Origin: Monocercomonoides exilis PA203
Lineage: Eukaryota; Protista; Preaxostyla
Direction: 5' to 3'
DNA length: 64,000 nt
Assembly: GCA_001643675.2 (NCBI GenBank)
Contig: LSRY02000032.1
Coordinates: forward strand, 124,001 to 188,000
Below are positions 7,293-51,944 of this stretch, piece after piece (within the stretch, counting starts at the first letter, position 1; every line of letters starts with the position of its first letter). The notes beneath the pieces were generated by a model. The model was not told the DNA's origin and searched no databases. It was given only the letters and a program-made list of their open reading frames with translations. Made by a program: the position numbers and the translations under genes.

Positions 7293-10200
7293 CTACAACA
7301 AGAGGGTCTCATTTTCTTTTTCCCTTTCCTGTTCACTATCATCCTCAAAAATGATTTCAGCATCAATTCCTCCTGTTTGATCCTCAAAAGCCAGCTCTTC
7401 TCCAGGCGTTCCTTCATCGTGCTCCTCAGTTCCATTTTCAATAATTGTTTGCCTTTCATCAAACAAGTACGATGATCCATTTCCAAAAATATTCTGCCTT
7501 TCAAACGAATCAGCTGCTTGAGAAGCAATTTCTTTATCAATTGTTCCAGTTTTATGTAATTCATCTTCTGAAGGATGTAGTTCATTACTTTCTCTTTCAA
7601 CGTCCATTTGCATATCTTTGAATGACGTTTCTTCGCTTCTTCTTTGCGTTAAAATTGTAGCATCGCCCAAGTCATCAGTATCATCACTCGTCTGGTTATC
7701 ACTCAACAACTGCTTCTGACTCAGGTTTTCAGAATCGCTCCGATCTTCATACTGTTCTTCAGTTTCACTTGTAGCTTTCCAATTCTCATCTTCCCTTTCC
7801 CTTGAAGTGTCATCTTCATCTCCATCTGCATCCATTTCAGCATCCGATACACGCACCGTTTTTGAACGCCGTCTAAGTGAGTGTCGCGTTGTTTGATGCT
7901 GTTGGTGGCTGTGCTGAAGGAACAGTGACTTATCACTTGAACTCTCAGACAATTGCATAAAATTGGAGGAACTTTGTGTTGGTTGCTTTGCTTCCATATC
8001 GATTGCATTTGGATCCCAAGCCGAAGATCTTGATCCTGATTGCATTAGTAATTTTTGCGATTCGGATAAATTGCTCATATCACGTAAATTAATTGCACTT
8101 TCACTTTGAGCAATTTTGGAGTTATTGAAAGCACTTCCAGAAATTGTCTCATTCATAGAAGTGATTGCACCATCTCCAATTTGCTCATCCTCCATGTTGT
8201 CTATCATTGCGATCTGTTCTAATTGTTTGCATATCTCCTTCAATTTAATCCTCAACTCATTCTCTGCTTCTTTTTCGCTTTTCATCTTCATTTCCTGCAA
8301 AATATCAAGACGGATTTCATTTAGTCTCTCTGATAATTCTTTAAGCCAGTCTGAACCGTAATACCTTGTCAGCTCACGAATTGCATCTTTCATCAGTTTT
8401 TCAATTTCCACAAGCTCTTTTTGGCGCAATTTTCTCTCATTCTCATCAATTTCTCTTTCTCGCTCCATATTCGCTCCTTCAGATGCTTCGCCCATTTCTT
8501 GATGTTGATCTGCACCTTTGCTTGTCGCTTGGTCAAACTGTCCATTCATTATAAATGTTTCAGGCTGCTTCAGTGAAATAACTGATTGAGGAGGTGTTTC
8601 AACTGTTGATAGTAATAGATTTGCGTTTACTCCTGGCTTTTGATAATTCAATACTCGAGGTACAGAACTGGTTTGAGATGCTCCATCAGTCGTTGGAGAT
8701 AACGAAGATGTTTGAAGCAAACCCGAATTTGAATCTGGAGCACTCCGAGAACAAGATGGTTGACACATTTGAGACATGGGATCAAGAAACAGGTCAGAAG
8801 TCGAAGCTACACTCACTTTGATTTTTCGCTTTTTATCTGTTTCCAACTTGCGCAATGGCTCTTTGCTCAGTTCTACAATATTTCTTTCTTTACCTTTTTC
8901 TTTCTGCTTTTTCCTTAACTTCTCAATTTTCTGCATAGCTTCATCAATCGAACAAGCTTTCATTCTCATCATAACCTCCAAAATAAGTTGGGAATCTTTG
9001 AGTCTCATCTTTTCCAGCGCTTCTTCTTCCTCTTTTATCTGCTTTTCTTCTTCCTCCATCTGTCCTTCCACATCCGGATCATCAATCATCTCATCAATCC
9101 CAAACTCAAACCTCCTCCATGGCTTTTCCTTAAGCAGCCTTTTCTTTATTTCCTGCCTCTTTTGTGTCTCCTGCTCGCCTCTCAGCTCAATCACTTGCTC
9201 TGCCTCATACATCATGTTCTCTATGTTTCCCACCATCAGCGTCTCCATGTTGCGCAGAGGTCCATATTGGATGATGTCCACAGACAGCACAGGCGCCAAA
9301 TGAACATAATTTTCTGTGGTTTTCGGAAGAGAAAGAAAAGACAGAAGCGCTCGACGCAGTGCGAGTGTTGTATAATGCGTAAGAAAAGGTGAAAGTGAAA
9401 TCTGGCTTCCGGTTGATTGCAGTGACTTTCCTTGCAATTGAGGTGTGGACGAAGCAGAAGTATCTGCTTTTTGTATGTGCATCGATGGAGACATTAAAGT
9501 TGATTGTGTGATTGACATTGAAGTTGGAGAGAAACAGCAAGAGGAAGAAGAAGTGCCCAGAGAAGAAGCAGACATCGTCTGGCTCATGGGAGAAGGAGAC
9601 ACCGAATGAGACGGATAAGCCGACGATTGCTTTGACATTTTTGGAGATGAAACAGAAATCAAGCTTGCCTTGGACTTCACTTTTGTATCGTCCATCCGCT
9701 TTAGCGGTGAGAAATTCGCACTTGACAGCGATTTTTGCTGTTCTGCCTTTCTTCCTGCGATTTGAGCACCCTTCAAAGAAAGTCGTTTTTGCTGCATCTG
9801 CCCACGGCTGTTCTGTCCTTTGCGTTTTGAATCGCCTTCATTCGAATCGTTTTGAGTGCCTGTCACACAAACAAGTTTGTCTAAGCGGGGGAGAATGATT
9901 GGATAGTTAATTTGCTGGAGGCCCACTGCATTCATCATCGATGCTGAAGATGCCGGAACAACAGAAGGCAAAGAAAGCGCAGCGAAAAAGAAAGAAGAAA
10001 GAGAATATTTCATCGAATATGTCGCTGAAAGATGACGAGAAAGTTGTGAATGCACAGAAACAGTGTTCAATGTAGCAAGCGCTTCTTGTATGTCCCTTTG
10101 AGTGATGTTTTGTCCAGAAGCGATGGATGCCAGCAAAGAAGGCGCAAAGCACAGCTGAGATATGACAGAAGCAGTTGCCGAGGGAATAAAAGGAATAATT

Positions 10201-13200
10201 GAAGAAGAAGAAGGAGAAGGAGAAGAAATAGCTGTGGATGATGAAGCTGGCCCGGTTGAAAGAGAGGCAGATGGATGTGCAAGGAGAACTGGTACACAAG
10301 AAAATGCACCGAGGTGTTTGCTTGATGGAGATAGATTGAATGGAAGAGAAGCCAAAGAAGAAGAAGAAGTTGGAGTTTGACGTAGAGATGGATGGTGGAG
10401 TGCATTTGGAGTCATCAAAAACGGAGTTTGTGCTTGTGGGAAGGTGCTGCGCATGGCAGGTGAGAAAGTGAAAGAGAAAGAAGAAAGATAAGGAAAAGCG
10501 ATCTCAGGGAAAGGAGGAGATTGAGGCGAAGGGATAGGAGTTGGAGTGGAAGAAGGTGAAGAAGGAGAAACAGGAGAGGAGGTTAGAGAAGAGCTGAGAG
10601 GAGAAAGTGGTCGATGAGTGGATGGAGACGTGGTTAAAGAAGCAGGTGACAAAGAAGGTTTGAGCATTGAATTGGGAGTATCGGGGGGAGTGAGGAACAA
10701 AGGCGAAGAAGAGGAGCAAATGCCTGGCTGATGCTGCTGCGTAAGAGGATGAGATTCAAAAGAAACAGTTGGGAAAGTGGATTGCGAGTCGCTTTGATAC
10801 AAAGAAGACGGCGAGCATGCGATTGTTGAGGAGGACTGCCTTGATCCAGGAATCTGCTGTTGCAATTGAAACTGAGGCAAAGATGCCAACGAAGCCAAAG
10901 ACTGAGCAGGCTGCGGGATCGATTCGCTGAATGTGAGTGTGCTCAGAGGAGAGTAGTGAGAGAATGAGAGGACGCTTGACGCTTGCTGCTTGGATGAAGA
11001 AGTGACCAGATCTGGCGGAGGAGATGGTGGAGATGCGGGTGGAGAGATTGCTGAATTGAGGCTTCGTTCTTTGCTGCTGTCCTTTTCATCCAAATCAAAT
11101 GCTTGTTTGTTGGCTAAGTTGTTAACTGTATTATTTTGATTGGTGTTGTTGATTCCTTCTTCCTTGAGATTGCACATTGGCAGCTGAACATTGCCTGCAC
11201 TGCCAACACCGTCCTCGCTTTGTGGAGCAGAAGCAGTTGAAGAGAGTGCTGTGCTTTGTGCATCGTTGCCAAACCGTGTCGGAACTGAGTTAATTGTCAA
11301 TGGAACAGGAAGAGAAGACCGAGAAAATGGCTGCGTGGTTGATGAAGCAGGGATTGATGGGCTGAATGCAACACCCACCGTGCCATTTGAAGGGGAAGAA
11401 GTGGTTGAAGATGATCGAAGCAGCTGCTGTGTCTGAAGCTGGTCAAGTTGAATCTGCTGTTTTTGTGTTGGAGACTGCTCAATATTCGCATTCTGCATAT
11501 TCTCTGCATCTTTCCTCAGAGCTGAATGAGTTGATACTTGTGGGGTTGAAAACACTTTTGATCTCATAGCGTTCCTCTGATCTCGCTCTCTTTTCCTCTC
11601 AATCAGCTCTTCTCTTCTCTTCTCTCTTCTCCTCGCCCTCTCCGCTGCTGCTGCCTCTCTGTCCTTCAGCAGCTTTCTGAGCGTCGCATATATCTGGCCT
11701 GCTTTCTCCGCCCTGTTCAGCTTCGTCTCTGCCACTTTGATTTCTCTCTTCACCCTCTCTCCACGAATGAGCCGCTCAGCCAACAGCTTCGCCTCGCTCA
11801 TCCCAGCCACCGCAGCGTGTGTTGGCGGCGTCAGCTTCAGCAGCAGCACACTCGCCTGGTTCGGGCCGCAGTAGTCGTAGCAGGAAAAGACTGTGACCAC
11901 TCTATTTTCGTGTGCAGCAGCAAACCCTCTCGGGAAGAACTGATGTGCCCTGATGAGCATGTCAATGTTGTTAGATGCCATGAATCTACGGCACGTGTCG
12001 AGTGAATATGGTGTGCGGTTGCCGTTTGGCAGATCCACATCCCCTGGGTCAGCCCACAAAGTGGTGTGCTGAATGTCCTGGTAGCGCTGCCTGTCGTGGC
12101 CGAAGTTGTAGAGTCGGGTGAGTGGGTCTTCGCACTCGCGGAAGTAGTCGAAGCGGGGCATCTGTGGCATTTCTTCCTCCACATTCAAACAAGGGATCAT
12201 TGCTGAGAATCCCCCGTGGCAGATGAGAATGCGCCGCTCTTCGATGATTGGGGGCAAGGGTGCTGTTGGCAGAAGAGAGGCAGGTGGATTCGGGGGTGGA
12301 CGAGGAGGAGGTGGTGGAGGTGGGATAAGCGCAAAGGGAAATGGATGCTCAGGGAATGTGTCATTGTTTGGTTGAAGCATATTTGAAGTTGGTGAAGTCG
12401 ATTCTGTTGACGAAGAAGATGAGCTTTGAGGCAAAGAAGAAGAAATAGAAGAAGTCGATGGAGATGATAAAGTTGCATTTTGATTCATCAGTTGTGGCAA
12501 GGATGTTGCTGAGGGCAGTTGGGCTGCTGAGAATGGTGATAATGCGGATTGCGTGGCTGAAGATGCAGAAGCAGACGATGAGGCTTGAGACGAAGAAGAT
12601 GCGTCGATAGCAGAGGGATTCGGGAAAAGGAAAGTTTGTTTGAAAGACGACGAATTAACCGAAGCAGAAGCAGAAACAGCATCAGAAGAAGAAGAAGAAG
12701 CCAAAGTTGAGATAGAAACATCTTGACAACAGATGTTGCTGTCTTTGAACGAATTGATTTGAGTCTGTCTCAGCGTCGCTGCATTGACTTGAGGTGTTTC
12801 TGTTGCAATGCCATCAAACAAAGCAATAGACCGCTTCCCACAAATGCAGCAAGCAGAAGTTATGCGCCTTGACAATGGAGGGCACGAAACAGAACGCCGA
12901 TGTTTGGAATATGAAGAAGTAGCAGGATTTGGATGTATTGAATGGCACAGTGGAGGAGAGGCAGAGGGACTGGGTGTGGGTGTTGCGACAGATGAGGCAG
13001 CGCTGTATTTCGCCTTGAGTGAAGCAGAAGGAGCAGAAGATTGGCGCAGCTGGTTGAACGATAAGAACTTGCGATCATTGACAAATGCGCTGTGCATCAA
13101 AAGAGAAGGAGATTTGCGTAATGCAGAGAGAATGCAATGGCCAGTGAGGAGAGGATGGAATGGCATGTGTGTGGCAGACGGGTGGAAAGTCCAGGACTCC

Positions 13201-16200
13201 ATTCGAGACAGAAAAGACTTTGGAGAGCAAGAGGAAAAAAGAGAAGGAGATTTTGTGTGAAGCCAATTTTTGCTGAAGGAAACTGATTTTTTGTTTAAAA
13301 CTTCGCGTTTTGGTTGAGACAGCAAAGGAGGCTGATGAAGCAAGCCAGGAATGCACGGATTGGATAGCGAACGAGATGACTTTTTCTGCAGAAGATTGTC
13401 AGACGGTGAACGAGAATGCGAGGAAACTGCCTCTGCTGCTGCTGCTAAAGCTGAAGAAGAAGAAGAAGAACAAGAAGTGGAAGGCGAACGCGACTTGAGA
13501 TGTGTCCGAACGCCTAGTGGAGAAGCCGACTGATGTCTGGAATGTGCAAATTGGTATCTCCGCTGTAGAGAATGGCGGAAGTGCTGTTCGTCTCTCAGTC
13601 TTTCCCTCATCTTCTGATGTTGCAGAATTCTCTGTTTCTCCTCGTGTGAATGCTTTCTGTGCGGGTGCTGGTGCTCTGGTGTTGAGAATGAGTACATTCT
13701 TTCTTCGTTGAAATTTGACAGATCGATTTGCGGATCGGAAAATGACATGCCATACGAATTGTCTCCGGGACTTCGAGCTGTGCTGAGATAGGCTTTGCGT
13801 GAAGAGTGATGATGTGCATTGCTTGTCTGCTCACTTTCTTCACTTTCATCAAAATCTTCTTCCTCCTCTTCTTCATCTTCATCAACTTCTTCCTCATCGT
13901 CTTCATCGTCTTTGTCTTCTTGCTTCCCTTTTGTGTTGTTATAACTATTGTCTTCATTCTGTTCAGCTTCCAGACTTCTTGCTTTTTCATCAACAGGTCC
14001 CAATTTCATCATCTTCTTTCTCTCAAAGAAAGTATCTGCATCTCTCAAAGAATCCCTCATTTTCTGTCTTTCCATTTCTGATGTTTGCTCTTTGTGCACT
14101 TCTAATTCTGATTCTGCTACTCTTTCTGTCTCCAGCGAAACTGAAGATGACATTTCAGGAGGAGATGCAGTAGAATCAACAGAAAGCTCGAACAGAGAAC
14201 AAGGTGTGGGAGGCATGGTGGACGAAGGGAGTGTGAGAGAAGTGGAGGAGATGGAGAAGGATGTTGAATGAGAAGAGCCACATTCAGATGTTGCAGTCGA
14301 GTTTGACAGAACAGAGGAAGAAGTGATGGAGCCATCTGACGCTGAATCACGCCTTTCTGTTTTGGCTGACTTTCTCATCAACCGATTGCTGAACTTTTTT
14401 TTCTTTTCCTTTTGATTGTGTGATTGTGATTCTTTGTCTGAATTTTGCCGATTTGCTTTTGAGCTGAGTTGTTCTTCCTTTGCAAACACTGTTTTTGTGT
14501 TAATTTCTTCAACTTTTGCATTTTTGCTGCCAAACTCCGCATCCATCTTTCGAACAGAGCACAGTTCAGGAGAATTATATGACACAGTTTTGTATTCCAC
14601 GCTCCATCTGCCTCTTCTATGCACTTTTGATCTGAATATCTTCTGAGTAGTATCTTCATCACCTTTCAACGATGAATTGTCAGTGCGATTGAGATTGTTC
14701 AATGACTTGTTTCCTTCCGATACGTGGAATGCTTTGCCAGCAGATGATTTAGAGCAAATGAGAGAATTAGACCATCTGCGCTTGAGACTGTTGTATGCGT
14801 CAATATCCATTTCATCATCATTGGTGAATGAACCAAACACATCATCATCATTGTCATCATTGTCATCATCACCTTCTTCACTGGAAGAATTACAGCCATT
14901 ATCGTTGATAGTAACATCCTTCAACAAAGCACTTTCTGCAGTTGAATTGGACATTGAGCATGCAAATGGAGAATGAGGTGCTGAATGTGAACCCACAACA
15001 CGAAAACGACGTGAACAGTGCGTTTTGCGCTTTCTCCTCATCTTCAGCTGCGAAACAGATGAAAAAAGATGTTGGATGCAACTTGTGCAGATGAGAAATG
15101 AATCATTTCCTGAGAACTGCTTGCTGCTCTTAAATGAAGCGATTTCGCAAGAATTGGTAAGCAAAGGCAAAGAATGGTATGGACAAGAAGGCAATTTTGA
15201 AGTTGAGGTTTGAAATTGCTTTTGAACAGAAGGAGATTCCTGGTAATCAGTTAGCTTTTGCGGAACATCCGGATTTCTGTTAAGAGAAGGTGAATGCGAT
15301 GTCACATCTGTGGAAATGTTATTGGTTGATGATAATGCTAATGCTGATGCTGATGATGCAACAGTTGATGGATACAGAATTGAACCACCTGAAGATGCAT
15401 TCAATGTCAAAGGAACCGAATTATGCCCTCCTTTCATAGGAGAAGTTGGAGGTGTCATTGCCAAGCTGTTGTGTGATTGGAACGAGAAATTGTGGAGGTA
15501 TTGATTGTAGAAGTTGGGCTTTTGCATGGACTGATTTTGGTACAAGCGCAAAGGAGCAGCAGGAGATGCTTGGAACACTGGAGATGACTGAAGCAGCAGA
15601 GACGAGTTTGAAGCAGGAGAGGAAAAGGAAGATGAGCCTGAGTCTGGTGTTGGTAGAGATTCAAGGAGATCATGTGCGAATGTGGCTAATGGAAGAGAAG
15701 GCTGAGAGAGAGAAGCATGCAAACTGGGCCGGGAAATGCTAAGCAGTGATTGTGAAGCAGGCTGTTGAGATTTGCTAAGCAACGAAGGAGATTGTACCGA
15801 GAGTGAGGCGTATGGAACTTGTATCGTTCTGGTTGGGTCAAGCGGAGGTGCCAACGGGTTGTATGCTTCATTGTAAGAGTTTGACAATGAAGAGCGAGAT
15901 TGCATGTTCATATTCTTCAGAGGATAAATACTGTTCCCAAAGTCAGCTGGAGATTTTCCATTGAATGTCCTGGCAGAATCAGCAGAATCAACAGCAGTGG
16001 CAATGCCACATAATGTACAAACAGACAAGAATGATGGGATTGAGCAATTGATAAAGCTGGCATTCATCGTTTTCCCATTCACCGACGCTGGCGATGCTAC
16101 AATACCAGGAAAGATCGAAGGTGAAAAAGAAGAGCCAATCTTTGCTGATGTGACCTCAGATGACGCTACAACAGGCGTTGCATCGACTGAATCAACACCT

Positions 16201-19200
16201 TGTGTGAGTGAGATCGAAGACAGTGTGTCCGAACGAGAGGGCGTAATATCGGATGGCAGAAGTGACTGTCTGTCAGACAGAAGAGGAGTAACAGCAGCAG
16301 ATGATGGATTGTTCCCAGCTGCTAGTGACAGCTGGCTTCCACTCAGATGCTTCGAAAGACTCTGCAGCTGCTGTTGCTTCAGCTTCATTTCTGAGTCCTG
16401 AGGATGAATGCGATTGAGAATCCCCGAGCTTTTCGATGCCCCCTGAATTTCCTGGTTAAATGGCTCCTTTACTGAAAGTGGCGCAGAAGCTGATTGTGTG
16501 GGAGAAAGAGACTGATTGTGAACCAGCGACACATACGTAGTTGGAGAAAGCAGCGACTGTGCTTTGGAACGCTGGAGCTGTGCTGTGTCTCTTCCTGATA
16601 TATCTTGACGCGCCTGATGAAGAGGCGTGTGCGTCAGTGAGGGAGACAGGCTCTGTGTCATCGGTGTGTGCTGCTCTGAAGATGAGCCAGCTGTTTTGAT
16701 TGATGAGGAATACTTGATTGACTGCAGAAATGAGTCAGATGATGGAGATGAGATTGTTGAAAGCTGCTGCTGTTGCTGCGAATTCGTGCTGTACAAGTTG
16801 TTTGCAGAGGAATGCAACGAAAACTGTCCATTTTGCGCTTCAAAATGGGCAGAAAACGGAGTTGTCTGCAAAGATTCTCTTTGTTGTTTGCTCATCTGCT
16901 GCTTTTTTTGCATATTTTCTTTGTATTCTTTGAGAAACTTCTGCTGCTCGTTGTATTTCTCCACCCACTGGTTGTAGATTGCCATCTGTTCTTTGTACAC
17001 TTTCTCAGCAAGCGTCCTCGCATCAACATCATCTTTACTCAGAATAGCACCAAAATCCAATTTATTGCCATCATTTGATAACATATTGTTCTTCTTCTCT
17101 TTCTTCTTTCTCATCTTTCTTTCTTCTTCTTCAACTTTTTCAAACAAGGACTTCAGCTTATCTGGCTGCGGAACCACTGGTAAAGGAGGATGGTACTTCA
17201 GTGTGATGATCATTGCCATGGGCATGTTGTTGAACAAGTCCAGAAACTGCAGATAAAGCGGATGTGGCAGCTTCGGCTTCGACCTGCTGTCCTGCCCCAG
17301 TTTCCCCATCCCGTCTTCCTTCCTGTAGCCAAAGCACTCCTTCTCATCCACTTTGATCTTCGAGTGCAGCTCGTCGTTGAATCCCCAGTCGAACGAGCGG
17401 AAGGACTCGTGATTTCCTCTCAATAGAAACACTTTGTTTGGAAGCGCCAGGCGATACAGCAGCAACAGCAAGATAACCTCGAGTGAGTTTTTCCCTCTGT
17501 CCACGTAGTCGCCCAGAAACACCACAGCAGACCGTCCTGCAGGCGCCTTTATGACAGCATCCATCACACTCAGTGCGGAACGCAGGGAGTTCAAAGAGCC
17601 ATGAATGTCACCCACAACAAGCAGGCCATTGATGTTCTCTTCTTCTGTTGTTGTACCTGGGTCAGGCGCGGTTGAGGCGCTGTACGCAATTTCTGAGTTG
17701 TGGCTGCTGATAGCAGATTTTGCTGAAGAAGAGAGCGGAGGAATAGCAGAGGTGTCTTTGAATTTGAAAGAAGATGGCTTTGATTGATTGCCATTGGAAC
17801 TGTTAGATTCATCGCTTTCAAAGAGATCTTCTTCATCCCATTCTTCAACATAGTCTTCTTCGTCCTCGTCTTCTTCTCCTTCTTCCAAAATGTCAATCAA
17901 TTTGCCTGCTTCATTCTCTCTATTATCATCCTCCATTCTTCCTTTGCTCTGTTTTGCCTTCTCTTTCTCAATTCTTTTCTCCTCCCTCAACCTCCTCCTC
18001 TTCCTCCTCTTCTTCATCGTCTCTGCATTGATATACGTCACCCCTTTCCCCTTTCTATACCCAGGCCCAAAATGAACATCCAGCTTCACCAGCATCGACG
18101 TCCCGTGCTTCGAATAGTGCTGTTTGGCAAGCGACAGAATAGACACAATCATATCCGACGAGAAATGGAGTGCAAGCTGCATCGTGATAGGGTCATACCG
18201 GCAGAAGATGACCCTCCGCACATTCTCCACAAACGACAGCGTGATCCCTTCCTCACTCACCGGAAAGCCCAAACGAGGCGGCGGGTAAGGCTGCCGCAGA
18301 ATGTGCATTTCAGTTGGCGAGCGGTGCCATCCGAACCGGAAAGCAGCTTGGCGTGGATCAAACAGAGTTGAGGGGAAAAGAACAGCAGCTGAATGAGAAG
18401 AACAGCGGAAGGTTGTGCGGCTGATGCGTTTGAGTGCGCGGGAGGGGGCGATGGTGAATTGGGAAGAGGAGCCTTCTCGGAGAGGGTGGGAGTGGTGGTG
18501 GGTGCAGCAGCAGAGCGGGCAGCAGATGGAGGTGTGGGTGATGGCATCAAGAGATGATGATGAGGAGGAGGAGGAAGTAACAGGAAGATTTGATGATGAG
18601 CCTAATGCAAAGATACTTGAAGAAGAAGAAGGAGGTTGCGTTACATGTCCAGTCGCTGGTGAGTACAGAACAGCACCTCCATTCCTCATCTGTGTGGTTT
18701 GGCTCATTCGATGCTGATTAACCAATGCATTTGGACCAGCCCGTGAGATTGAAGGAGTCAGTACAGCTGAAGAGAGCATCGCAGCAGTCACAGTGGCTGT
18801 CTCAGAAGGAGCGGAAAGGGCAGAAGTGTTGGAAGGAGGAGGAGGGTGGAAGGGGCTTTTCTGCAGAGCGGCGGTGGGAGAAGAAGCAAAAGCAGAGAAG
18901 GAATGGCTGGAGATGGAGGAATTCACTGGGGAGAATGGGAAAGCGTTGAGGTTTGTATTTGAAGAAGAAGGAGAGGAGGAGGAGGAGGAAGAAGAGGAAG
19001 AAGATAAAGGAGCAGGGCCAGCTGATGTGAGGGTGGAAAAAGTGAGTGATGATGCTGACATGCGAGGTGATTGTGCTCCGTATTTTCTTGAATTCAACCG
19101 ACAAGATGAAGAAGAAGAAGAGGAAGTGGATGATGAACCAGCAGCAGAAGATGAAGAAGAAGAAGAAGGTTTTGGTGTCATCTGTGAAGGCGAAGCAATC

Positions 19201-22200
19201 TGATTCGCACTCATAAATATCTTCTCATCCTGCTCTCTTTCTCTGATTCTTGCTTTGTGCTTTGCTTCTGCAAACTTGAACCTTCTTGTTTCCTTCGCAC
19301 ACGCCCTGCTTATCTTCGCCAGCTTGTCTTTCTTCCCTTTCAGCCGAAGCGCCCTCTTCTTCGTCTCAAACAGTGCCAGCCGCCTTTTCATCCGCTCAGT
19401 CAGTGTGGTTGAATAAAACGTGTGCAATTTCTTGCCGGCAGCATCTTCTCCTGTCCCATCGCCATCCACTCCATTTCCTCCTCCTCCGCCTCCTCCATTG
19501 CCCCCTCCTCCTCCCTTCGCATATCTGTTCTTACTCTTCGTCTTTCTCTCTCTCGCTCTTCTCCCCTTTTCTCCTTTCTCCGCCACAGTTTCTCCGACGT
19601 CTCTTGTGAGTGCGTTCTGCAGAATGTCCTGCGGCGGGCGGTGTGTGACTGGCAAATAGCGATGGTGGAAAGGATGGTAGATGACTTGGTAGCTCATCCG
19701 CCACGACTCAAAGAAGCCGACAATGCGGCAGGTGTGGTTGCAAGGAACAAGAGGCGCATGGGAAGTGACAAATGGCTGGAACATACGGGGTGGGAGCTCG
19801 CCATCAGAGGGGCTGATGGGGAAGAGAGGGGAAGAGGAAGAAGAAGGAGAAGGAGAAGGAGAAGAAGAATAAGATGAGGAAGAAGAAAAAGAGGATGAAG
19901 AAGATAGCATTGTAGAAGACTGCATAGAGAACTGGTTGAATGAATGATGCAAACAGGTGGGCATTGAAAAGGGATCAGGAAACAAAAAGCTCTGTCCAAT
20001 TGGAGTTGGCAAAGAATCGCTCAAGTAATATTGCTCTGATGGTGACTGGACAGCCAATGGATCAGATTGAGACATTGAAGAAGAAGGGAGATTAGGAGAG
20101 GAAGGAAAAGCTGAAGAAGAAGAAGAAGAAGAAGGAATATGAGAAGAGAAAGGTGATGATGATTGCATAGAAAGCTGAAGTTGTGGATCAGATGTGTTTT
20201 GAGTGTTGTGTGGAACAAGCTGATAATTTGGAAGAGGAGGCGGAGGACGAGGCGCAACTTGTCCTCGCTTGCTGACAGGAGAAGGAAATGATTGAGAAGA
20301 AGAAGAAGAAGAAGAAGAAGAAGATATGGCAGGAGAAGAAGATGATGAATATGTTGAAGTGGAAGAAGATGAAGTGGAAGAAAACGATGAAGACGATGAA
20401 GTGAAAGCAGAAGAAGCGTGTTGTGAAAATGAAGAGAAAGAAGAAGAAGAAGAAGATGATAAAGTAGGTGGTGTGGGTGAAGGATGTCTTGAAGTGAAGA
20501 GGGAAGAGAATTGAGGAAGCTGAGGGGAAGACTCATTGAATGCAGGCGTGGCATGATGGACAACTGGAGTGAGCATAAACGACGAAGGACAAGAATTCGA
20601 ATTGAACGAAGAAGAAGAAGAAAGAGAAGAAGGAGACGGAAAAGAAGGAGAAGGAGAAGGAGAAGACAATGAAGAATAACCCTGCCTCATCCCCATCTGC
20701 ACTTGATCCCACGCCATCCAATTTTTTCTTCCTCCTCCTCCGTTCCTGACTGCCTCAAACACCCAGCTGCTTCTTGTCAAGTCAACCGCGGGCATCTGGT
20801 GCGAGGAGGCAATTCTGAGTGGCAGGCGCATGGACGCTCTTTCTCTCAGCTGCGAGGCAAACTCCAACGCTGCAAAGGAGTCCATCACTTCCTCTGCGTG
20901 TTCAATGGCCAGGCCGATGCGGTTGCGCTGCTGAGACAGAAACAGACGCTGTGCACGACGCTGGATGAAAGTGGAGCGCTTGGAGGAGGAGGAGGGATGA
21001 GAGGAAGAGGAAGAGGAAGAGGAAGAGGAAGAGGAAGAGGAAGAAGCCTTTTGCGTCATCGAGGGAACAGACATAAGAGAAGAGGCAGTGTCTGCAGGTG
21101 TGAGAGGGGTAACAGCAGAAACAGCAGAAGTAGCAGCAGACAAGCCATATTTGAGTGAAGTTGTGGGCGTCAGTGAAGAAGAGGCAGACATCAACGAAGG
21201 TGTCTTTTGAGTAAGCGAATTCACCTCAAATTCACTCAATTGCTGCGAAGAAGGCACACAAACTGTGTCAGAAGGCGTAATTTCTGGTTTGTTTTCGCAG
21301 ATTTCGCTGTTTTTCAGGCTTTGCAGCTTATCTTCTTGCAGAATCTTGTGCTTCTGCTGTGCTTCTTCCAAAGCCTGCTGCAGCTTCTCCTTTTTCATCT
21401 TATCTTTCTCTTTCCTTCTTCCCATACATTCTCTTCTTTCCCTCTTCGCCTCCATCTCTTTCTTCTTCTCCACATCGTGCATCCAGCTAACATCTTCCTC
21501 ATCCAGCACACGATTGCACCACGACCCTTCGCTCTCTTCCTCTTCCTCAGCAGCCGTATACCATCTGTCTCCTGGAAGCGCTTTATTGCTCTTAACAGCT
21601 GATCGGTCTGTCAGAAACAAAGGCTTTTTTTTCTCCTTCTTTTCTCGCTTCTTCCCTTTGGCAGGAAGAATGCTGCGTGTGCTTTGAGGAGTGAGTGTGA
21701 GTGTGGATGACAGGACTTCTGGAAGTACATTTGAAGAGGAAGAAGAAGAAGAAGAAGAAGAAGAAGAAGATGATGATGATGATGAAGATGAACTTGCATT
21801 TGACACATTTCCCAATGGTTGAGCAGAAGCAGAAGATGCTGAAGCAGAAGCAGCAGAAATAATCTGAGGAGTCGGGGAAGTTGCCTTTGGCGTCTGTGAA
21901 AGCGGCTCAGTTTCGGTCATTTGTGTGCTTTCTCGAATGATCGTGTTCTCTTCCACATCCATCTGGTTATTCAGTACAATTGGAGCATTCATGTTGGAAT
22001 CGTCTTTGTCTTCATTCATTGAATTTGAGGATAAATTCATGTTTTGATTGTTTTGTTTACTTCCCCCTTGTTCATTTACTGTCATCTTCACATCAGCTGC
22101 AGTTCCATTCAAGTAATTATTTGCTTTGTTCTGTGAATCTTTTTCGTTTTCTTCCTCGTTCATTTCTTCTTCTCCTTCATCTTCATCTTCGTCTGCACTC

Positions 22201-25200
22201 ACCACAACAAACAGATCATCCCCCGCACACCTTCCAGATGTGCTCTTCATTGGACGATTATTTACCATGCCATTGGTGAAAGGCTGTGGAATATGAATAT
22301 TGTCATCAGCATTCTGAATGGAAAGCAATGGATTGTCAATAACATGGCTATCAACACTTGGAGTCGCTATAACTCGGCTCTGCATATCTTCTGTTCTGCC
22401 TTGCTCTGCTGATTTTATCCCAATCACGCCACTTTCAATGACATTTCCACATCCATCAACCTCTTTCAGCATATTCCCATTGTCCACATATATCGAATTC
22501 CCAATCTCCATCTCTTCAAACAGCACCCCTTCATCGCATTCTTCATCGTCCTCTGCGTTTTCCTCGCTCGACGACGAAAATTCGTCCAGAAAGAAGCCAC
22601 TTTTGGAGAGCGAATCCTTCACACGCAGCCAAACATACTCAGCTGCATCTTCATCACGGCATTCGTCTTCAAACGCATCCTGCTCTTCGTCCCATTCCTT
22701 CAGAACATCACTTCTTCTCCTTCTCCTTCTCTGTTTTCTTCTTCTCATTGTTGCTGTCATTTTCATTTGATTTCTATTTCCTGTCGCTGTTGCTGTTCCT
22801 GCTATTCCTGCTTCTGTTATTCCTCTTCTAGTTTTTCTTGTTCCTTGTAATGTTTGACTTTCATTTAGTTTTTTGTGTGTTTTCATTGAAGAGCCATTTG
22901 CCTGCTGTTGTCTATCAAGAAGAGGCAGCTGAGAAAGACTGTGATAAGATTGGGCAGAGGGGCTTTGGAGAGATGGGGTGGAAGGAGGAGTAAGCATACT
23001 GACAGAAGAAGGCGAGGTTTTGGAAGAAGAAGAAGAAGAGGAGGAGGAGGAAGAAGATGAAGGATGTAATCCAACAGATTGAGTGGAAAACGAGCTTCCT
23101 TCTTTCACTGCATTCACATCTGCTCTACCAATTGGTGAATCAAACTCATTCGAAGGCAACAAAGAAGAGTCCGAATTCGCAATTTGTCGCTGTTTCGATG
23201 AGTCAGAAACAGAAGCAGAAGAAGAAACAGAGCCGATTTCCTGTTTCAGCTGCATTTCCTGTGACTTCACCATCACCTGAGCAGATGTTGGAATCTGCTG
23301 TGTCACTTGAACTGTCTGTATTGTCTGTATTCCTTGTGAACTTTGTGAACTTTGTGCATTTTGTGTATTTTGTGCCATTTGTGCTGTTTGACTATGTGGA
23401 AGAGGATGCGTTTGAGAGCGTAAGCGGTGTTGTGGAGTGAATACAGTTTGATTACTTTGCTTAATTGCCTGTTTTGTGGGACTTTCTGGTTCTTGTGGCA
23501 ATGTTTGTGTGGAAGAAACAAAAGAACCACCACCACCACCAGCAGCAGCAGCAGCAGAAGAAGAAGAAGAGGCAGCTGAAAGCGAAGCACTGTAGATCGA
23601 GTCAGCAGAAGATGAAACAGAATAAACTTCTGTTTTTGAAGGGAGAAGAGGAGTGGAATATTTCCCTGTTGAAACTGTCATTGATCGGTGCAGTTTGGTT
23701 AGTGTTGGTGAAGGTTGTGGAGATAACTCTGAAGAATGTCTTGAGAGCGTATTTGTGTGTGTTAAAGACGATGATGAAGGCGAAGAAGAGGAAGAAGAAG
23801 ATGAAGCAGAAGGAGAAGAGGAAGAAGAGGAAGAAAAAGAAGGCGAAAACGAAGAAGAGCCAGATGGGATCAGATCTTTCCACAGAATGTGTGCTGAGGC
23901 TGGCGTTGGTGCTACAGATCGTGATGCAACATCGTCATTGTAGTCTTCTCCATATCCATTGTTGTTCTGCTCATCCACCTCTTCTCCTCCTCTTTCTCTT
24001 TCTCTTCTGCCACAAGCAGATGCAGCAGCGGAAGCAGAAGCAGAATGACAAGCACAATTAGAAGAAGCCAAATTACACATCTCTTCCATTGCCTCTTCCT
24101 CATCGTCTTCAATTCCTGATGACGTCGACAGCTCATCTTCAATCTTCTCATCAAATAAGTTGCAGTCCAACAAAAGCGGCCTTGGCTCAAACACAGGCGA
24201 ATGTGACGTTCCCCTTTGTCTTCTGATAAATTCTCTTTTGTTTCTCCTTTCCCACTTCCGTTTTTTGCTTTCAAACAGACGCTGTTCATACTGAAGCCTG
24301 ATTGCTTCTTCGTCTTGTTCTTGTTCATTCTCTTGTTCATGCTCTTGTTCTTGTTCTTGTGCAAGTCTCATTTCTCGCTCCATTTCTTCGATTTCTTCTT
24401 CTGTCATTCCTGTTGAATCAATGCCTGATGAAAGGAAAATGCCTCCATTTGCACCAGGAACCTGATGAATTGAATGTGATGTTGATACAGAATTCACTCG
24501 AGATGCAAAGGAAGGAGCAGGAGAAGGAGAGGAAGAAGAAGGCGATGGGGAAGGAGAAGGAGAAGGAGCAGGAGAAGGAGAAGACGTCAGAACAGGGGAA
24601 GGGGATTTAGAGTCAAATGAATTGAGAGGGGCAGGGGAAGAAGGAGAGGCACGATGAGCATATGAATGAGAATGCGTATGTGAATGTGTATGTGAGTGTG
24701 TGTGTGATTGTGTATTTGAATGAGAATTGGCATTAGAATGTGAATAATGACACTGATAACCTCGGCGCTGTGGCGAAGATAGCATTCCGTTTTTGGCTCT
24801 TCCATTGACAGAAGGTGTGGAGGATCTGAAGGAAGAAGCAGAAGAAGACATCGAATTACGGCCTGCCCATTTCGACGGGATCACAATTGGTTTTAGCACC
24901 CCTCCTCCTGTTGCTGAGCCAGCAAGTCCCAGTGAAGTTTCTCCGATGTACCGTCGCCAGCACAAGTAGAGCGCGGTCTGCGGAAGCGACGCAATTTTCT
25001 TGCGTATGATGCGCTGTTTAATTCTCCGGCTGCGCTTCTTCTCTTTCAGAACAGCCGTCCGCTTCCACTGCCGCCGCTGCCTTCGGATGATGCTGTCGAT
25101 CATGTCAGAGACGAGAGCAGTTGGGGAAGGATGGCGGGATGATGAAGAAGGAGAAGGAGAGGAAGGAGAAGATGAAGGGCAAGGTGATAAAGCAGATTGG

Positions 25201-28200
25201 ACTGAAGAAGCGGGGCTTTGAGGAGATGAAAGGAAAGAAGAAGACTGAGAGGGAGACAAATGTGGTGTGGAAGCATTGCGCTGCCGAGCAAATTCAGCTT
25301 CAGATTGACTCAAAAATCTGTTTGACTCACTTCCCAATGAAGATCCATCAAAGTGTCTTTGAGGTGTTGTGCTCAATGCAGACGCAGCAGAAATAGCAGA
25401 CGCAGCGGCAGCCACTGCTGAAGAAGAAGAGCCAGAATTAGCCAGAAATGCCTGGTTTTGCTGACTCCCCACATAAGTTGCTACACCCAGCACGCCTTCC
25501 CGCTGCCTGCCCCGCTCGCTCAGGAAGCGCTGGGTGGACGGAGAAATACTCTCGTTCTCGGAGAAATAGCCGCGGCGCAGTGGAAGCTTGCCTCCGGAGG
25601 CGCTGACGCTGCGAGAGCGAATGAGAAGGGCGGGTGAGGTGGAGCCAGAGGTTGAAATGGAAGATGGCACGTTAAAAGAGAACGAAGGAGAAGATGATGA
25701 TGAGGAAGAGGAAGAGGAAGAAGAAGTTGAAGTGAAAGAAGGAAGTGTGGTGTCATTTGTCTGAGGAAGTGATGTGTGTTGTGGGGATTTGAAAGCAGGC
25801 GAAAAAGCGTTGCTTCTCTTTGAAAGAGAGGGAGATAGGGACATTGAATGAGCAGACTGATTACGAAGATACGAAGGCGACTTCAGAAGAGAAGATGTGC
25901 GAGATTTAGATTGAGTGGGCTGGGTGACTTGCTTGCCGGTTGGGGGGAGTTGAAGCTGGGAGTGTGTGTGGTTGGTGGTGCTCTGCTGGTCAGAAGATGA
26001 TGATCCAGTTGGAGAGTTAGAACCTGTTCCTATTCCTGTTCCATTCCCCATTCCATTTGCTGTTCCATTTGTTGTTCCACTGCCTATTGGTCGCTGCAGC
26101 ACAGGAGTCATCGTGCGTGAACGAGAAGGTGTGGGTGATGAAGGCAGCGCTTTCGTTTTGCTCCTCTGAAAATATTCTGTCCGGATGTCGCGAGAAAGGG
26201 GAGAACCTGGTGTCTTCTGTGAAAAAGAGGCGATGGATGAAGAAATGGACAGGCCAGAAGGTGTTGATGCAATAGTCATGCGTCGAGAGCGCATATAAGG
26301 TGAGGGAGAAGAAGAAGAAGAAGAAGAAGAAGAATTTTGTTTGGAGTTAAGCGGCATAATTGCATTCTTGGTATCCTTTTGCTCTCCTATTTCATTTTCT
26401 CCTCCGTTTGTGCTAGTTTTCCCCCTCTGGCTGTTGTTAGACGTTCTCGATGAGTTTGTGCTTCTTCTGCTTGCATCAGAAGCTGCATTGTTCGCACTTT
26501 GCATGCCTTTCCTCTTCATCCTCCGTCTGTTTGCTTCATCGTCATAATATTCTTCCTCTTCCTCTTCTTCTTCTTCTGTTGCTGCCACGTTCTTCACCCT
26601 CAGCCTTCCTCTTTCCTCTTCTCTTCTCCTGACCGCCAGCACAATCCTCGCCAGCCTCTCTTCTCTCGCCACTTTCTTCACCATTCTCTTGATCGCCCTC
26701 CCAAACTCCCCTCTATGTGCTGCTGAGGTGTGGATCGAAAACTGCGGAATGATTCGATTGTTCACTGCCTGAAGAAGCAGACGAGCGAATCTCAGTTGTT
26801 CTATGGGAGTTAAACCAGACGATGATGCAACTGGGTTGTTGCTGCTGGACTGCTCAGAATTGGCGGGTTGAATTCGATTTTTGCCTGTTTTGCTGTTTTG
26901 CTGCTGCAATTGTTGTGATTGTGATTGTGTTTGTGATAGTTCTTTATATGCCTGCTGTTTGTTCTGTGAAGTTGTCATTGAATTAGAATTAGAATTAGGA
27001 TTAGGATTAGCAGCAGCAGCAACAGCAGAGGGAAGTGCATCTGGCAACACAGGCGGTGCCCATATCTCTTCCAGAAGGATGGTGCTGGGATCTCTGTCCT
27101 CTATGCCATCGTCATTATCATTGCCATCATTGACATCATTATCATTATCAGATAATAATTCTGATGGGGAAGATGATTTACTTAGCTCATCAGCATTGGC
27201 TTCTTGTTTCACTTTGCTCTTTTGTGAATATTCGCGTTCTGTTTTGTCGGTTTTGTAGGTCTTGGGTTTTTTGCTTCTGATTCGAACTGTCTTTTGTAGT
27301 TTCTTTTCACTTTTTTTTTCTTCGTCTTCTTCCTCATCTTCTTCTTCCTCCTCTTCCTCTTCATCATCATCATCCTCCTCCTCCTCCTCTTCTTCCTCTT
27401 CCTCTTCCTCTTCCTCCTCATCTTCATCATCAACTTTTGCTTTGCCCTCTTTCTTTTTGTTCAAAGCATCTTTCACTCCTTTTCCTGCTTCAACCTTTCC
27501 TTCTTCTGCCTTCTCATCTTCACTCATTTCTTCTTCTTCCTCCTCCTCCTCATCGTCCTCTTCTTTGCTTTCTCTTTGTTTTTTACCTATTTTTTGTTGA
27601 GAACCTTGATTTTTCAGCATTTCTTGTCTTTTTAATGAATTTTGATTGTCAATTTTCTGTTTTATTGTTTGTGATTTTTGAGAAGTTTCCTTCATTTTCC
27701 CTCCATTTGAACTTCCCTTTTGATTTTCTGCTTTTCTTTTATCTGAACTTGACGAATCCTTCAAAGCAGAATTTTCTTTTTCCTTTTCTTTCTCCTTCTC
27801 CTTCTCTTTCGCCTTCAACCTCTCCTTCTCTTTCTCTTTCTCCCTCAGCACAATCGCATGCTTCCTCATTCTATTTCTCTCTCTCCTCTCCTTCCCTTCC
27901 TTCGCCACAATCTTCTGCTCGTCCGTCATCTGGTCATTTCCCGGCTGATACGCCTTCTCACAGGGCATCTCCGTGTGATTCGGAATGACGCACACCAGCT
28001 TCCCTTCTTCATCATAGCCAGCAATTCTTCCATTGATATCATCCAGCTCTGCAGGACCCGGAGGAGTCTTTGAGGAAGGCCTGGTGAAAACAGCCATGTT
28101 GCGTAATACAGTGACAAATGGCATGTCTGATGGGAATATGCACTGGCCGATGATTCTTCGCCCTTGCGTAATGATGGCGACGAGGGTGGAGGTTGGGTGA

Positions 28201-31200
28201 AGGAGAGGGGTGGGCAGAATCTGCTCAGAGGGAGTGCGGGAGAGGGAAGCGGGGATAGATAATGAGTCAGTGGATGAGGTTGTGGATAATTGTGTGATTG
28301 AAGTTGAAGATGAGGAAGACAAGGAAGAAGAAGAAGTTGAAGAGGAAGAAGAAGAAGGTGTTTGTGTGCCTGCCAATTGTGTTGGCTCAGTCTGTGTCAT
28401 ACAAAGCGACAGTTCATCGTCGTTTTCGCGTTGTGTCTGCTGGCTGTCTGGCTGGTTGGCTTCAGCTGTTTCACCTGCTTCGTCCATCTTATTCCCTTCA
28501 TTCCCTTCTTTTTCACTCAAATTCATAGTTTTGTCATTCACCTCTGCTCCTAAATTCTTCTTCATTTTCCCATTCCTTTCCGTTTTCCCTTCCTTTGTCC
28601 CATATTTCGCCTCTAATTCCGTTTCCTCGCTGTGGCTGTTAATCCCCTGATAAATGTGTACTTTCCCTGGAACACAGAACGCAGCCACAAAATGCGGCGT
28701 CTGGTGCCAATTCGCATGTGGATCTACAACACGCTGTGGTTCTTGTCTGAAGAATGAAGAGGAAGAGGAAGAAGATGATGATGAAGACAGCTGTCCAACT
28801 GCATTCAGCATACGAGGGGTTGAAGCAGGACTTCCCATCACACTTCTTCCAGGATAGCCAGCTGATGACGAGTAATAAGGATAAGCACCAGAAACTCCAC
28901 CAAGTGGCGAAGACAGCACAGAATTCCCAAACAGACTCGAATAACTCCCATACACTCCTCCAACATATTCTCCTCCACCAACACCCGCAGTGCCATACGG
29001 AAACCCATCGCCATACAGCAAGCTCCCCACTGAGCCATTTCCTGAATGCGCGCCATCGCTACCTCCTTGTCCATACGCCGAGTAAGGCGATACTCCCATC
29101 GTCGGGTGCAGATGCTTGCGGAGTGGGTTGATCTGCCTCACACCAGCAGATGCGCCGTCAAATTTGGAAGAGAAAGGGCGGGATCCGACAGAAGCTGAAC
29201 GGGAACTGCCAGAAGAAGAAGAAGAAGATGTGGAAGCAATGGATGACTTCTTTGAGACACCTGATGGAGACGAAGAGCGTGCTCTTTCATTGGCAGCAAA
29301 CTGTTTTTTGGCAGAGGAAGGCGGGTGGTGCAAGTTGTCATAGGAAGTTTCATCATTTCCGTTCTCGTTCTGCTCAAGTGAATACAGAAAGGAGCCTGGA
29401 AAGCCAGGTGCGGATGAACCTGAGCCTGAGCCTGAACCAGAAGCAGAAACAGAAGCAGAAGCAGCAGCAGCTGTGATGGATGAAGGGAAGAGCAGTGCGG
29501 AAGGATGATCGATTGAAGCAGTAGCTGCAGCTGCAGCTGCAGAGGCAGAAGCAGAAGAAGAAGAAGAAGGCAGCATTGCAACATCAGAAGTGGTTCTTTC
29601 ATTCTGCAAGTCAAAATAGAAATCACTCATTTCGTCTTGTCCGTTTCTTCTTCTTTTTCCCCACATTCTTTCTCTCTCCATCTTCTCCTTCTCCTTCTTC
29701 TCCTGCTCCATCTTCTGCCTTCTCATCCTCTCGTTCTCTGCATCCAGCACCCTGTTCTTCACCTCCTGCGTCGAATTCGCCAGGAAAAACGACAGAAGCA
29801 CCGTCGAGTCTTCGCAAAGTGCCAACGTGGAGCCATCGTTTGGAGGCATTGGCGGGAACTGCATGTTCTCCAGCTGGCAGAAGTCCCCTAAGTCGTTGAT
29901 GGAGATTGGCCAACCGTGGGCAGTTGGGATGGTGTGAATGGGGAAAGGGGGGAGGGTGATACGGGTTGGGTAGAGACGGGAGATGACTGAAGAAGAAGAA
30001 GAAGATGATGATGAAGAAACGGCAGCTAGTGATGTTGGTGATGATGGGATTGAGTGTGCAGTTGATGTGCCATTAGCTGCATCTCCCTGTGGACTGTTTG
30101 CTGAAGCAACTGAAGAAGAAGGCAATTGTGGAGCAATATCTGGATGTTTGATGTCTCCCAGTACAAACTGCGAAAACGAGCGGGGCAGCACGTATTCCAC
30201 AGCGCGCGTGAGTGGGAAATGGCCCGGGTAGTACATAGCAAGCGCGGAAGGGTCGATTTTCTGTCTCTTCACAGCTGGGTCAAAGGGGCTGTGCTGCTGC
30301 AGGAGCTCTTCGACGGTGTATCCGTGTGTCTCGATGGTCGGGTGGTCGATGAGGTGCGGGCGGGGAAGCTGGCGAGGAGAGGATGGAAGGGCAGGATGGG
30401 ATGATTGGGTAGATTGGGCTGATTGAGTAGATGAAGGGTCTGTGGAGGAAGAGGAGAATTCTGACTCGGTGGAAAAAGAAGAAGAAGATGATGATGATGA
30501 TGAGAAGGAAGAAGAGGAAGAAGTAGAAGTAGAAAAAGACCCGGAATTTGTAGCAGGGCCACTCCAATTAGAAGCATTTCCCACTCCAAATCCACCCTGC
30601 CCTGCCAGCCCTGCCAGCCCAGCCACTCCTGCCCCCTTTTCGCTTCCTCCAACAGGCACATTGGCAGCAAGCTCTGTGCCTTTGATTCCCATCAGCGTTC
30701 TTCTAATCCCTTCGTCGTATCGCTCAAACAGCGTCCCGTTCAGCAGCTTCACCACCTGGTTTTTTTCTGTCTCCCCCAAGTTCTCAGACTCAAAGAAGGA
30801 CAGCTGATTCTCATTGATCACTGTTGATGGCTGCGGAGGTGCGAATTTGAAGAGAAGCAGCGAAAAATCGTCGGGAACGAGCTGCAGTGTGGAGCGGTTC
30901 TCGTTCGCTTCTCGCATAATACGAGGCGCCTTTTGGGTTGTTTGACTGGGAATATCAGATAGAGAGAGATCCGAAGAAGAAGGAGAAATAGAAGATGATG
31001 ATGATAAAGATCCAGCTGAAGAAGCATTCGTGCTCTTCTGTTGCGAAGGCGACCAGAGATCGAACAGAGGGGGCTCAGGTGGGCGAGGGATCAAAATCGT
31101 CGGGCGCAGCCTCGGTGGTGAATCAGAAGTCGATTGGCGGCTTGCCTGGCGATGGCTGTGATCACACTGAGAGTTGGCAATGGAGTGCGTGCGGGAGCGG

Positions 31201-51600: not shown

Positions 51601-51944
51601 CTTCTTTTAATCATTACTTAAATGTATGATTGTTTGTTGCTTTTTTTATAATAATACTTAATTGACAGCTTTTTTATAGCTTCGTTTTGATTTTGTAATT
51701 TCGCTATGAAGAGCTTTGAAACCGAAAAAATAAAAAGATGAAGGATTATTGCAAACACAGGTCTTTCAGGAAAGGTTTCACTTGCACACGAGTTGATAGT
51801 TACAAAGCTTCTTTTTTCAATGATGAAACACAAAAACAACATAATAGTCGTCAAGCGGGAATATATGTCTTACTTTCACTTGAAAATGTTGATCAAACCC
51901 ATTTCAATTTTTATTGCAGGAAAATCTTGATTTTGAGAGTTCAC

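Follow-up and report, generated by a model that had tools for sequence, protein, structure and literature searches.

We describe here a giant gene of the PPP phosphatase family from the oxymonad Monocercomonoides exilis PA203, located in a window of 64,000 nt (the whole stretch of DNA that was analysed; assembly GCA_001643675.2, contig LSRY02000032.1, positions 124,001 to 188,000 of the forward strand). The catalytic domain of its 8,286-amino-acid (aa) product is divided into three conserved pieces by two insertions, the second of which comprises 1,639 aa. The gene probably encodes one very large cytosolic protein in which the three pieces pack into a single catalytic domain, with both insertions looped out as disordered chain. 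An initial annotation of the window had recognised the interrupted domain; beyond that, the domain was found to sit in an 8,286-aa open reading frame (ORF) of islands and spacers and to belong to a gene family.

The gene was identified by translation of the window as a single stop-free ORF on the minus strand; across the same interval the two other minus-strand frames contain 274 and 396 stops and the ORF frame none. All PPP motifs of the initial annotation were recovered in this ORF, in three pieces and at the places where it had put them. The gene and its phosphatase domain are arranged as follows:

7293..32153, minus strand: whole PPP gene, a stop-free ORF of 8,286 codons with about 15 conserved islands and unalignable Ser-rich spacers between them.
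18015..18452, minus strand: PPP piece 1 (aa 4568-4713), N-terminal helices and strand beta1 (MLVKLDV), 60-75% identical to the paralogs.
17703..18014, minus strand: spacer 1 (aa 4714-4817), charged and K/E/D-rich, between beta1 and the GDIHG strand, with a strand-to-strand gap of about 150 aa.
17166..17702, minus strand: PPP piece 2 (aa 4818-4996), GDIHG, GDYVDRG, GNHE, FNNMP, a strand and the Pro-rich collar KYHPPLPVVP.
12249..17165, minus strand: hairpin-loop insert (aa 4997-6635), 1,639 aa, 20% Ser, no Pfam domain, no internal repeats, G + C content at third codon positions (GC3) 0.385.
11697..12248, minus strand: PPP piece 3 (aa 6636-6819), EERRILICHGG, WADP, RAHQ, SCYDYCG and a long helix, 71-76% identical to the paralogs.

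The spacers that separate the pieces measure about 105-150 aa (first) and about 1,640-1,655 aa (second), and both agree with the initial annotation, which had given a charged insert of about 150 aa after the N-terminal helices and an in-frame insertion of about 1,650 aa before HGG. The metal ligands of motifs I and II (D64, H66 and D92), together with D95 and R96 (PP1 numbering here and below), are present in GDIHG (aa 4848-4852; 17598-17612) and GDYVDRG (aa 4881-4887). Motif III is present as GNHE (aa 4913-4916; 17406-17417), within RGNHE (aa 4912-4916), and provides the ligand N124 and the general acid H125; FNNMP follows at aa 4974-4978. The C half contains the metal ligands of HGG (H173; aa 6646-6648; 12210-12218) and RAHQ (H248; aa 6735-6738; 11940-11951, followed by SCYDYCG), as well as WADP (aa 6700-6703). 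The distance from the F of FNxxP to the H of HGG (F-to-H) is 1,672 aa, compared with about 17 in typical PPPs. In an alignment of 87 PPPs, 34 columns show a conservation of at least 90%, and in all of them the 8,286-aa protein has the consensus residue; the six metal ligands are among these.

In the HMMER check proposed by the initial annotation, Pfam Metallophos (PF00149) matched both halves: the N half gave an E-value of 3e-18 over positions 4-108 of the 191-position profile, and the C half, searched by itself, gave 0.002 over positions 102-188. The two matches abut in the profile, with no part of the fold missing between them, and the score was 67.4 bits for a 2,300-aa stretch against a gathering cut-off of 21.5 (C half alone, 18.9 bits). 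Searches of the PDB with phmmer gave rdgC/PPEF, PP1, PP5 and PP2A for both halves (N half, rdgC, 8e-16; C half, PP5, 2e-8), and the subfamily scores of the domain were 79.7 bits for rdgC, about 70 for PP1 and PP5, and 64 for PP2A. Membership of the PPEF/rdgC subfamily was rejected; this subfamily gave the best PDB match by a small margin only, and a Pfam search of the 8,286 aa found no EF-hand, IQ, TPR or other partner domain. By sequence, the domain is best regarded as fitting no named PPP subfamily.

The giant insert has a length of 4,917 nt and a G + C content of 44%. It had been called Ser/Gln-rich, which applies to Ser (20%) and not to Gln (only 6%). None of its 1,639 codons is a stop, whereas the other five frames contain 41-118 stops, and the probability of a stop-free frame calculated from base composition is about 5e-37. 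Apart from a few trinucleotide runs, neither Tandem Repeats Finder (TRF) nor local BLAST revealed tandem or internal repeats; positions 14835-14874 were X-masked in the local BLAST, lie outside the TRF stretches, and were included in the composition and open-frame statistics. These positions form an acidic Asp/Asn-coding run inside the insert. The first half of the insert has no other copy in the organism's own genome. An intein was also considered and rejected: the insert contains no Hint or any other Pfam domain, it lacks the junction residues (Cys/Ser/Thr; His-Asn), and its C end reads ...APLPPIIEERR, without His-Asn. The initial annotation had likewise seen no intein-type ends.

Six-frame searches of the M. 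exilis PA203 genome (nanopore assembly of 82,301,135 bases in 101 contigs; PMC8767320), with each half as query, identified seven loci, each with the two halves in a single open frame and separated at the same place by a spacer of variable length:

C22: F-to-H 237 aa (loop about 220 aa), ORF 5,433 aa.
C47a: F-to-H 488 aa, ORF 5,038 aa.
C55: F-to-H 492 aa (loop 475 aa), ORF 1,501 aa.
C47b: F-to-H about 1,000 aa, ORF 3,488 aa.
C12: F-to-H about 1,500 aa, ORF 4,463 aa.
Gene in the window: F-to-H 1,672 aa, ORF 8,286 aa.
C33: F-to-H 1,958 aa (loop 1,939 aa), ORF 5,476 aa.

A HMMER search with the C22 domain against 1.84 billion representatives returned only eight proteins at E <= 1e-30, including KAK2954185.1, KAK2960447.1 and KAK2956627.1 of Blattamonas nauphoetae (F-to-H 53, 30 and 30 residues) and the partial KAA6392785.1 of Streblomastix strix (252 residues). 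The Blattamonas proteins are automatically annotated as hypothetical or as 'PP2A catalytic subunit'. The hairpin loop is short in Blattamonas, with 13-36 aa (36 in KAK2954185.1); in Streblomastix it has about 235 aa, and the M. exilis paralogs range from about 220 to 1,940 aa. The comparison with orthologues in related metamonads, also proposed in the initial annotation, therefore yielded the same domain with shorter loops in Blattamonas and Streblomastix. A tree built from the two conserved halves grouped the oxymonad giants in one clade (support 100/99) against 15 ordinary PPPs. Subclade A contained Blattamonas KAK2954185.1, followed by (C22, C47a) and (8,286-aa gene, Streblomastix; 93/85), and subclade B contained (C33, C47b) and (C55, two Blattamonas genes), with C12 on a long branch. 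Because short-loop Blattamonas genes occur in both subclades, the simplest history would be a short ancestral hairpin linker that was expanded repeatedly, above all in Monocercomonoides. The 8,286-aa gene can thus be placed as an extreme member of an oxymonad-specific giant-PPP family with loops of 13 to about 1,940 residues; a literature search found no paper describing this family.

The loops cannot be aligned among the paralogs. Pro-rich collars are found at both loop bases, TL(K/R)(Y/H)HPPLPxIP after the first strand and PPAPx(I/V)E(E/R)RR before the second, and no 60-residue window in the family's loops is rich in order-promoting residues. Two types of short Cys motif were detected:

16008..16019, minus strand: CxxC knuckle a (aa 5379-5382), context SFLSVCTLCGI, weakly similar to a Streblomastix loop motif.
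15078..15089, minus strand: CxxC knuckle b (aa 5689-5692), context SFLICTSCIQ.
12840..12851, minus strand: CxxC knuckle c (aa 6435-6438), context SCPPLSRRITSACCICGK, blastp E-value 0.048 to the Streblomastix loop motif.
ORF aa 3649 (C33), 2499 (C47b), 726 (C55) and 3179 (C12): Cys/His cluster within otherwise unalignable loops.

Hydrophobic-x-x-C-x-x-C knuckles occur two or three times in the loops of the 8,286-aa gene (3 versus 0.38 expected), C47a and Streblomastix. The loops of C33, C47b, C55 and C12 each contain exactly one CH[RK]CHxC[GN]xCS[VIL]H, which occurs nowhere else in those proteins and is followed by CxCxCH in three of the four. This cluster may represent a small module that binds zinc. 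When the C55 motif region was searched as protein against the own genome, the only matches besides itself were C33 (E-value 0.02) and a weak one on contig 23 (E-value 0.43). The Cys motifs are not essential to the family, because the loops of C22 and Blattamonas contain neither knuckles nor cluster. As judged by its visible constraints, namely the open frame, the Pro-rich collars and a few short Cys motifs, the loop seems to evolve almost freely.

Purifying selection on the C-terminal half, on which the initial annotation had made its proposal depend, was found together with purifying selection on the other half: the ratio of nonsynonymous to synonymous substitution rates (dN/dS) among the 8,286-aa gene, C22 and C47a lay between 0.09 and 0.16 for piece 2 and between 0.12 and 0.17 for piece 3, with dS saturated (1.2-1.9) or not computable. 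The fold was modelled with AlphaFold2 on a natural protein, the shortest-loop paralog C22 (799 aa; 60-76% identical to the 8,286-aa gene within the three pieces), using an alignment of family members and 77 ordinary PPPs. The predicted local distance difference test (pLDDT) score ranged from 80 to 97 within the three pieces, and neither spacer reached 50. Residues 60-756 of the model, with low-confidence stretches omitted, superposed on PP5c (4zvz_D) with Z 34.8 and a root-mean-square deviation of 2.0 A over 283 of 312 residues (27% identity), on rdgC with Z 34.2, and on PP1 residues 6-288 (1jk7) with Z 33.1. In this stand-in for the 8,286-aa copy, the alpha/beta sandwich is complete from all pieces and the counterpart of piece 1 aligns with the N-terminal helices of PP5 and PP1. 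Because the C22 model superposes on PP5, rdgC and PP1, the three pieces are predicted to form one complete PPP domain. Insertion 1, which is found in all family members at variable length and has low pLDDT in the model, lies between beta1 and the GDxHG strand, and insertion 2 lies at the hairpin turn between the LPxAxxI strand and the xIxxxHGG strand. In the topology of PP1 this turn is one full strand length away from the metal-binding His, and for this reason the loop is expected to exit pointing away from the catalytic groove.

In four RNA-seq runs from a single study, 0.99-1.00 of the sampled 31-mers of positions 11850-17849 were present. The runs belong to a 2024 metatranscriptome that is labelled 'synthetic metagenome' and kept as contigs, probably the rRNA-depleted culture metatranscriptome of PMC12308965. 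One Logan contig of 5,943 nt (ERR12411571_1232) encodes the paralog C55 and runs straight through its 475-aa loop. Compared with the genome, this contig lacks exactly one segment, a canonical GT..AG intron of 133 nt with 17% G + C near the 5' end of the C55 gene (contig 55:291595-291727, minus strand); because this intron has been removed, the contig is a spliced mRNA and run ERR12411571 is true RNA. The loops of the six paralogs and of Streblomastix are likewise free of in-frame stops. A word search for protein fragments across the junction of the insert and the C half of the 8,286-aa gene found none. The insert is judged to be real and translated.

We propose that a single polypeptide would be made, with the N-terminal pieces folding or being held until, after about 1,650 more residues, the C half emerges, docks on them and completes the di-metal site. 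Two insertions would be looped out of the domain: a first, about 150 aa long, that separates beta1 from the GDxHG strand, and a second of about 1,650 aa at the tight LPxAxxI/xIxxxHGG hairpin, the latter staying disordered outside the domain and tied off by the Pro-rich collars. As a rough random-coil estimate, the loop would have an end-to-end distance of about 20 nm, corresponding to an effective concentration of the two halves of tens of micromolar, and therefore enough for intramolecular assembly. We infer that the 8,286-aa copy folds like C22, assembles within one molecule and is catalytically active; since no metal ligand has been lost and the general acid is retained, metal-dependent hydrolysis of phospho-Ser/Thr is likely. 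The initial annotation had suggested an active enzyme that folds around a giant disordered loop. Its looped-out fold is supported by the open frame, the 34 conserved columns, the dN/dS values, the C22 model and the C55 mRNA, while activity is still an expectation.

Several points weigh against this interpretation. The counterpart of the phosphate-binding Arg (R221 of PP1) does not align cleanly: the family has PNGNR(T/C)PYS in place of the usual xRGxG, with the Arg three columns off and in a gap against rdgC. The SAPNYC loop, which binds toxins and substrate, reads SCYDYC, with S, Y and C kept and P and N replaced; both changes would leave room for altered or lost activity. The evidence for the fold comes from C22, a paralog that is 60-76% identical in the pieces and has a loop of 220 aa, and catalytic activity and the single chain are predictions from sequence and this model. 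Closure of a 1,650-residue loop is estimated to cost several kcal/mol of entropy compared with a tight turn, and the C half appears late during translation, so that folding may need help. Finally, the RNA runs show presence only and are compatible with a minor spliced isoform.

The displaced Arg (PNGNR) and the change from SAPNYC to SCYDYC would also fit a pseudo-phosphatase, a PPP-like fold without catalysis that serves as a phosphoprotein-binding or scaffolding module in a giant disordered protein, as would the HAG that replaces HGG in the Blattamonas orthologue and the strong divergence of the giant-PPP family from all named PPP subfamilies (27-29% identity). Pseudo-enzymes, however, normally lose some ligand or near-invariant residues. 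The six metal ligands, the general-acid His, the D95 and R96 equivalents and 34 of the 34 near-invariant columns are kept in the 8,286-aa gene, C22, C47a and C55 despite saturated dS, and we consider a pseudo-phosphatase unlikely.

There is a similarly small chance that the loops are working parts of the protein and not merely tolerated filler. The Pro-rich collars and the short Cys/His motifs, which could be zinc knuckles, are the features kept in them that would fit such a role. The loop would then be a built-in regulator or substrate trap, whose compaction, putative zinc stapling or phosphorylation gates the assembly of the two halves, or it would gather the enzyme into a condensate. With 20% Ser, the loops could be heavily phosphorylated.

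Splicing of the insert out of all transcripts, or out of a part of them, so that the working enzyme has a short hairpin, is improbable; the insert would then be a giant in-frame exitron or an alternative intron. The genome of M. exilis is intron-rich, with 1.95 introns per gene (PMC8767320), and the RNA evidence for the 8,286-aa gene itself consists of k-mers. However, an open frame of 1,639 codons here, and of 200-1,940 codons in the six paralogs and in Streblomastix, would not persist in an intron, and the insert, with 4.9 kb and 44% G + C, is unlike the introns of M. exilis (mean 119 bp, 27.6% G + C; PMC8767320). In addition, 99-100% of the insert 31-mers are present in the four RNA runs, and the spliced C55 mRNA contig retains its loop. 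Inteins and spliceosomal introns resemble the insert in interrupting conserved catalytic motifs in the DNA; here there are neither a Hint domain nor splice-junction residues, the frame is open, size and G + C content differ from those of M. exilis introns, and the insert is found in RNA contigs. Removal by splicing, which the initial annotation had offered as an option, is thus disfavoured.

The enzyme might instead be an oligomer, with the halves assembled between molecules by domain swapping, or consist of two chains that assemble after the loop has been cut by proteolysis. Tens of micromolar is only a moderate effective concentration for a tether of 1,650 residues, and a loop of this length is probably accessible to proteases. 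Nevertheless, a protein of 900 kDa should be present in the cell at a concentration far below even this estimate, and Pfam revealed neither a protease or intein domain nor such a motif. The Pro-rich collars conserved at the two bases of the loop also suggest that its ends are held together in one chain. We regard assembly between molecules or after proteolysis as improbable, and the cleavage and reassembly considered in the initial annotation found no support, neither Hint nor any other Pfam domain being present in the insert. Although the assembly rests on nanopore reads (PMC8767320), an assembly artefact, such as the chimera the initial annotation had named as a possible error, or a decaying gene with a relic C half is scarcely credible given the same architecture at seven loci and in two other genera, a C-half dN/dS of 0.12-0.17, no stop in 8,286 codons versus 274-396 in the two other same-strand frames, and the match of 99-100% of 31-mers in the RNA runs.

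The preferred reading, a single domain with looped-out insertions, is accompanied by a similar organization of the rest of the protein. The about 15 islands sum to 1,391 residues (17%), and the rest is spacer. The ten N-terminal islands are aa 21-150, 404-439, 601-662, 747-803, 1144-1170, 1303-1408, 1781-1831, 3519-3561, 3730-3807 and 4120-4190; these are followed by the three PPP pieces and by aa 7610-7740 and 7918-8007. Through the islands, the gene is collinear with C22, C47a, Streblomastix KAA6392785.1 (P0195) and Blattamonas KAK2954185.1 (P0045), and for the same architecture Blattamonas needs 2,166 aa in total, Streblomastix more than 3,022 aa (partial) and M. exilis 8,286 aa. The spacers between islands contain 19% Ser and cannot be aligned among the relatives. 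Because all spacers are Ser-rich and unalignable and the total length rises from 2,166 to 8,286 aa, the hairpin insert is best understood, from these sequences, as one case of linker inflation throughout the protein. The GC3 of the ORF falls from 0.57 in the islands (PPP pieces, 0.61-0.69) to 0.37 in the spacers, with the hairpin insert at 0.385; the spacers appear to drift towards lower G + C, and the value of the insert is taken as near background. Introns and 3' untranslated regions of the M. exilis genome have a G + C content of 26-28% (PMC8767320). A Pfam search over the whole ORF and eight conserved islands returned Metallophos only and no second family.

The first island is conserved in three genera:

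31704..32093, minus strand: N-terminal island (aa 21-150), conserved in Monocercomonoides, Streblomastix and Blattamonas.

Its sequence reads GFYCVFVFDEPD...RGFFTV...FRRFWRRHT. It had no Pfam match, and its AlphaFold2 model (pLDDT 46) was unusable; a weak atlas hint pointed to a USP7-type ubiquitin-like domain (score 0.90, 162 shared features). With a GC3 of 0.23, it is the exception among the islands.

The giants share GDxHG, GDxVDRG, GNHE, HGG, WxDP and RxHQ with known PPP phosphatases (PP5, PP1, rdgC/PPEF, PP2A), and the C22 model superposes on PP5c and PP1. They differ in forming their own oxymonad clade, in their protein lengths of 1,500-8,286 aa, in the two large insertions and in the altered SAPNYC and RG motifs. 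Insertions with no known function in an otherwise intact PPP catalytic domain are described for RdgC/PPEF and for Plasmodium PPKL, which has five, in the quoted text of PMC1885993 and PMC4256932; the latter text calls the PPKL inserts short. The oxymonad insert, in contrast, has 220-1,940 residues at one defined hairpin, up to at least five times the size of the domain (the quoted text gives no lengths for the PPEF inserts). Low-complexity inserts of Plasmodium falciparum are hydrophilic, fast-evolving and non-globular, lie in surface loops, are assumed to be extruded, and make the proteins much longer than their homologues (Pizzi and Frontali, summarised in PMC2705789). The oxymonad loops are likewise non-globular inserts in a globular domain of lengthened proteins, but they are Ser-rich instead of Asn-rich, have no simple repeats, are far larger, and carry short Cys motifs and Pro-rich collars. 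The kinase-insert domains of split receptor tyrosine kinases such as PDGFR and VEGFR are flexible, phosphorylatable docking inserts of about 70-100 aa between the lobes, both parts forming one active site. Their catalytic domains are also interrupted by a flexible insert, but they belong to another enzyme class, and the insert described here is 15-20 times longer.

The giant loop is therefore an extreme variant of a known phenomenon and is new in its scale, its lineage, its non-repetitive sequence and the graded series at one site. This natural series of loop lengths at one hairpin comprises 13, 36, about 220, 235, 470, 1,000, 1,500, 1,650 and 1,940 residues and, to our knowledge, spans a much wider range than loop-insertion experiments. 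If the long-loop members are active, a metallo-enzyme fold of about 300 residues tolerates an insertion of more than five times its own size, and its N half can wait minutes during translation for its partner. The 8,286-aa gene, four times as long as its Blattamonas orthologue, also documents linker inflation in Monocercomonoides, which bears on how a mitochondrion-less gut protist affords very large, mostly disordered proteins.

The window contains further genes. The ORF at 36959-47296 (minus strand; 3,445 aa) has no Pfam family at E <= 0.001 and may be another inflated, mostly disordered protein. Positions 51738-60065 (plus strand) comprise three same-frame ORFs of 527, 610 and 1,622 aa without a Pfam match in any of them, divided by single in-frame stops (TAG at 53319-53321, TAA at 55173-55175); they represent a single gene of about 2,775 codons that is interrupted by two stops (pseudogene, read-through or error) or else three abutting genes. 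A dual-specificity phosphatase gene (33864-34733, plus strand; DSPc, E-value 1.4e-29) lies in divergent orientation to the giant PPP gene, whose start is 1.7 kb away. An exact look-up of its product returned no public record, and its closest named relative is a MAP-kinase-phosphatase-like protein of Streblomastix strix.

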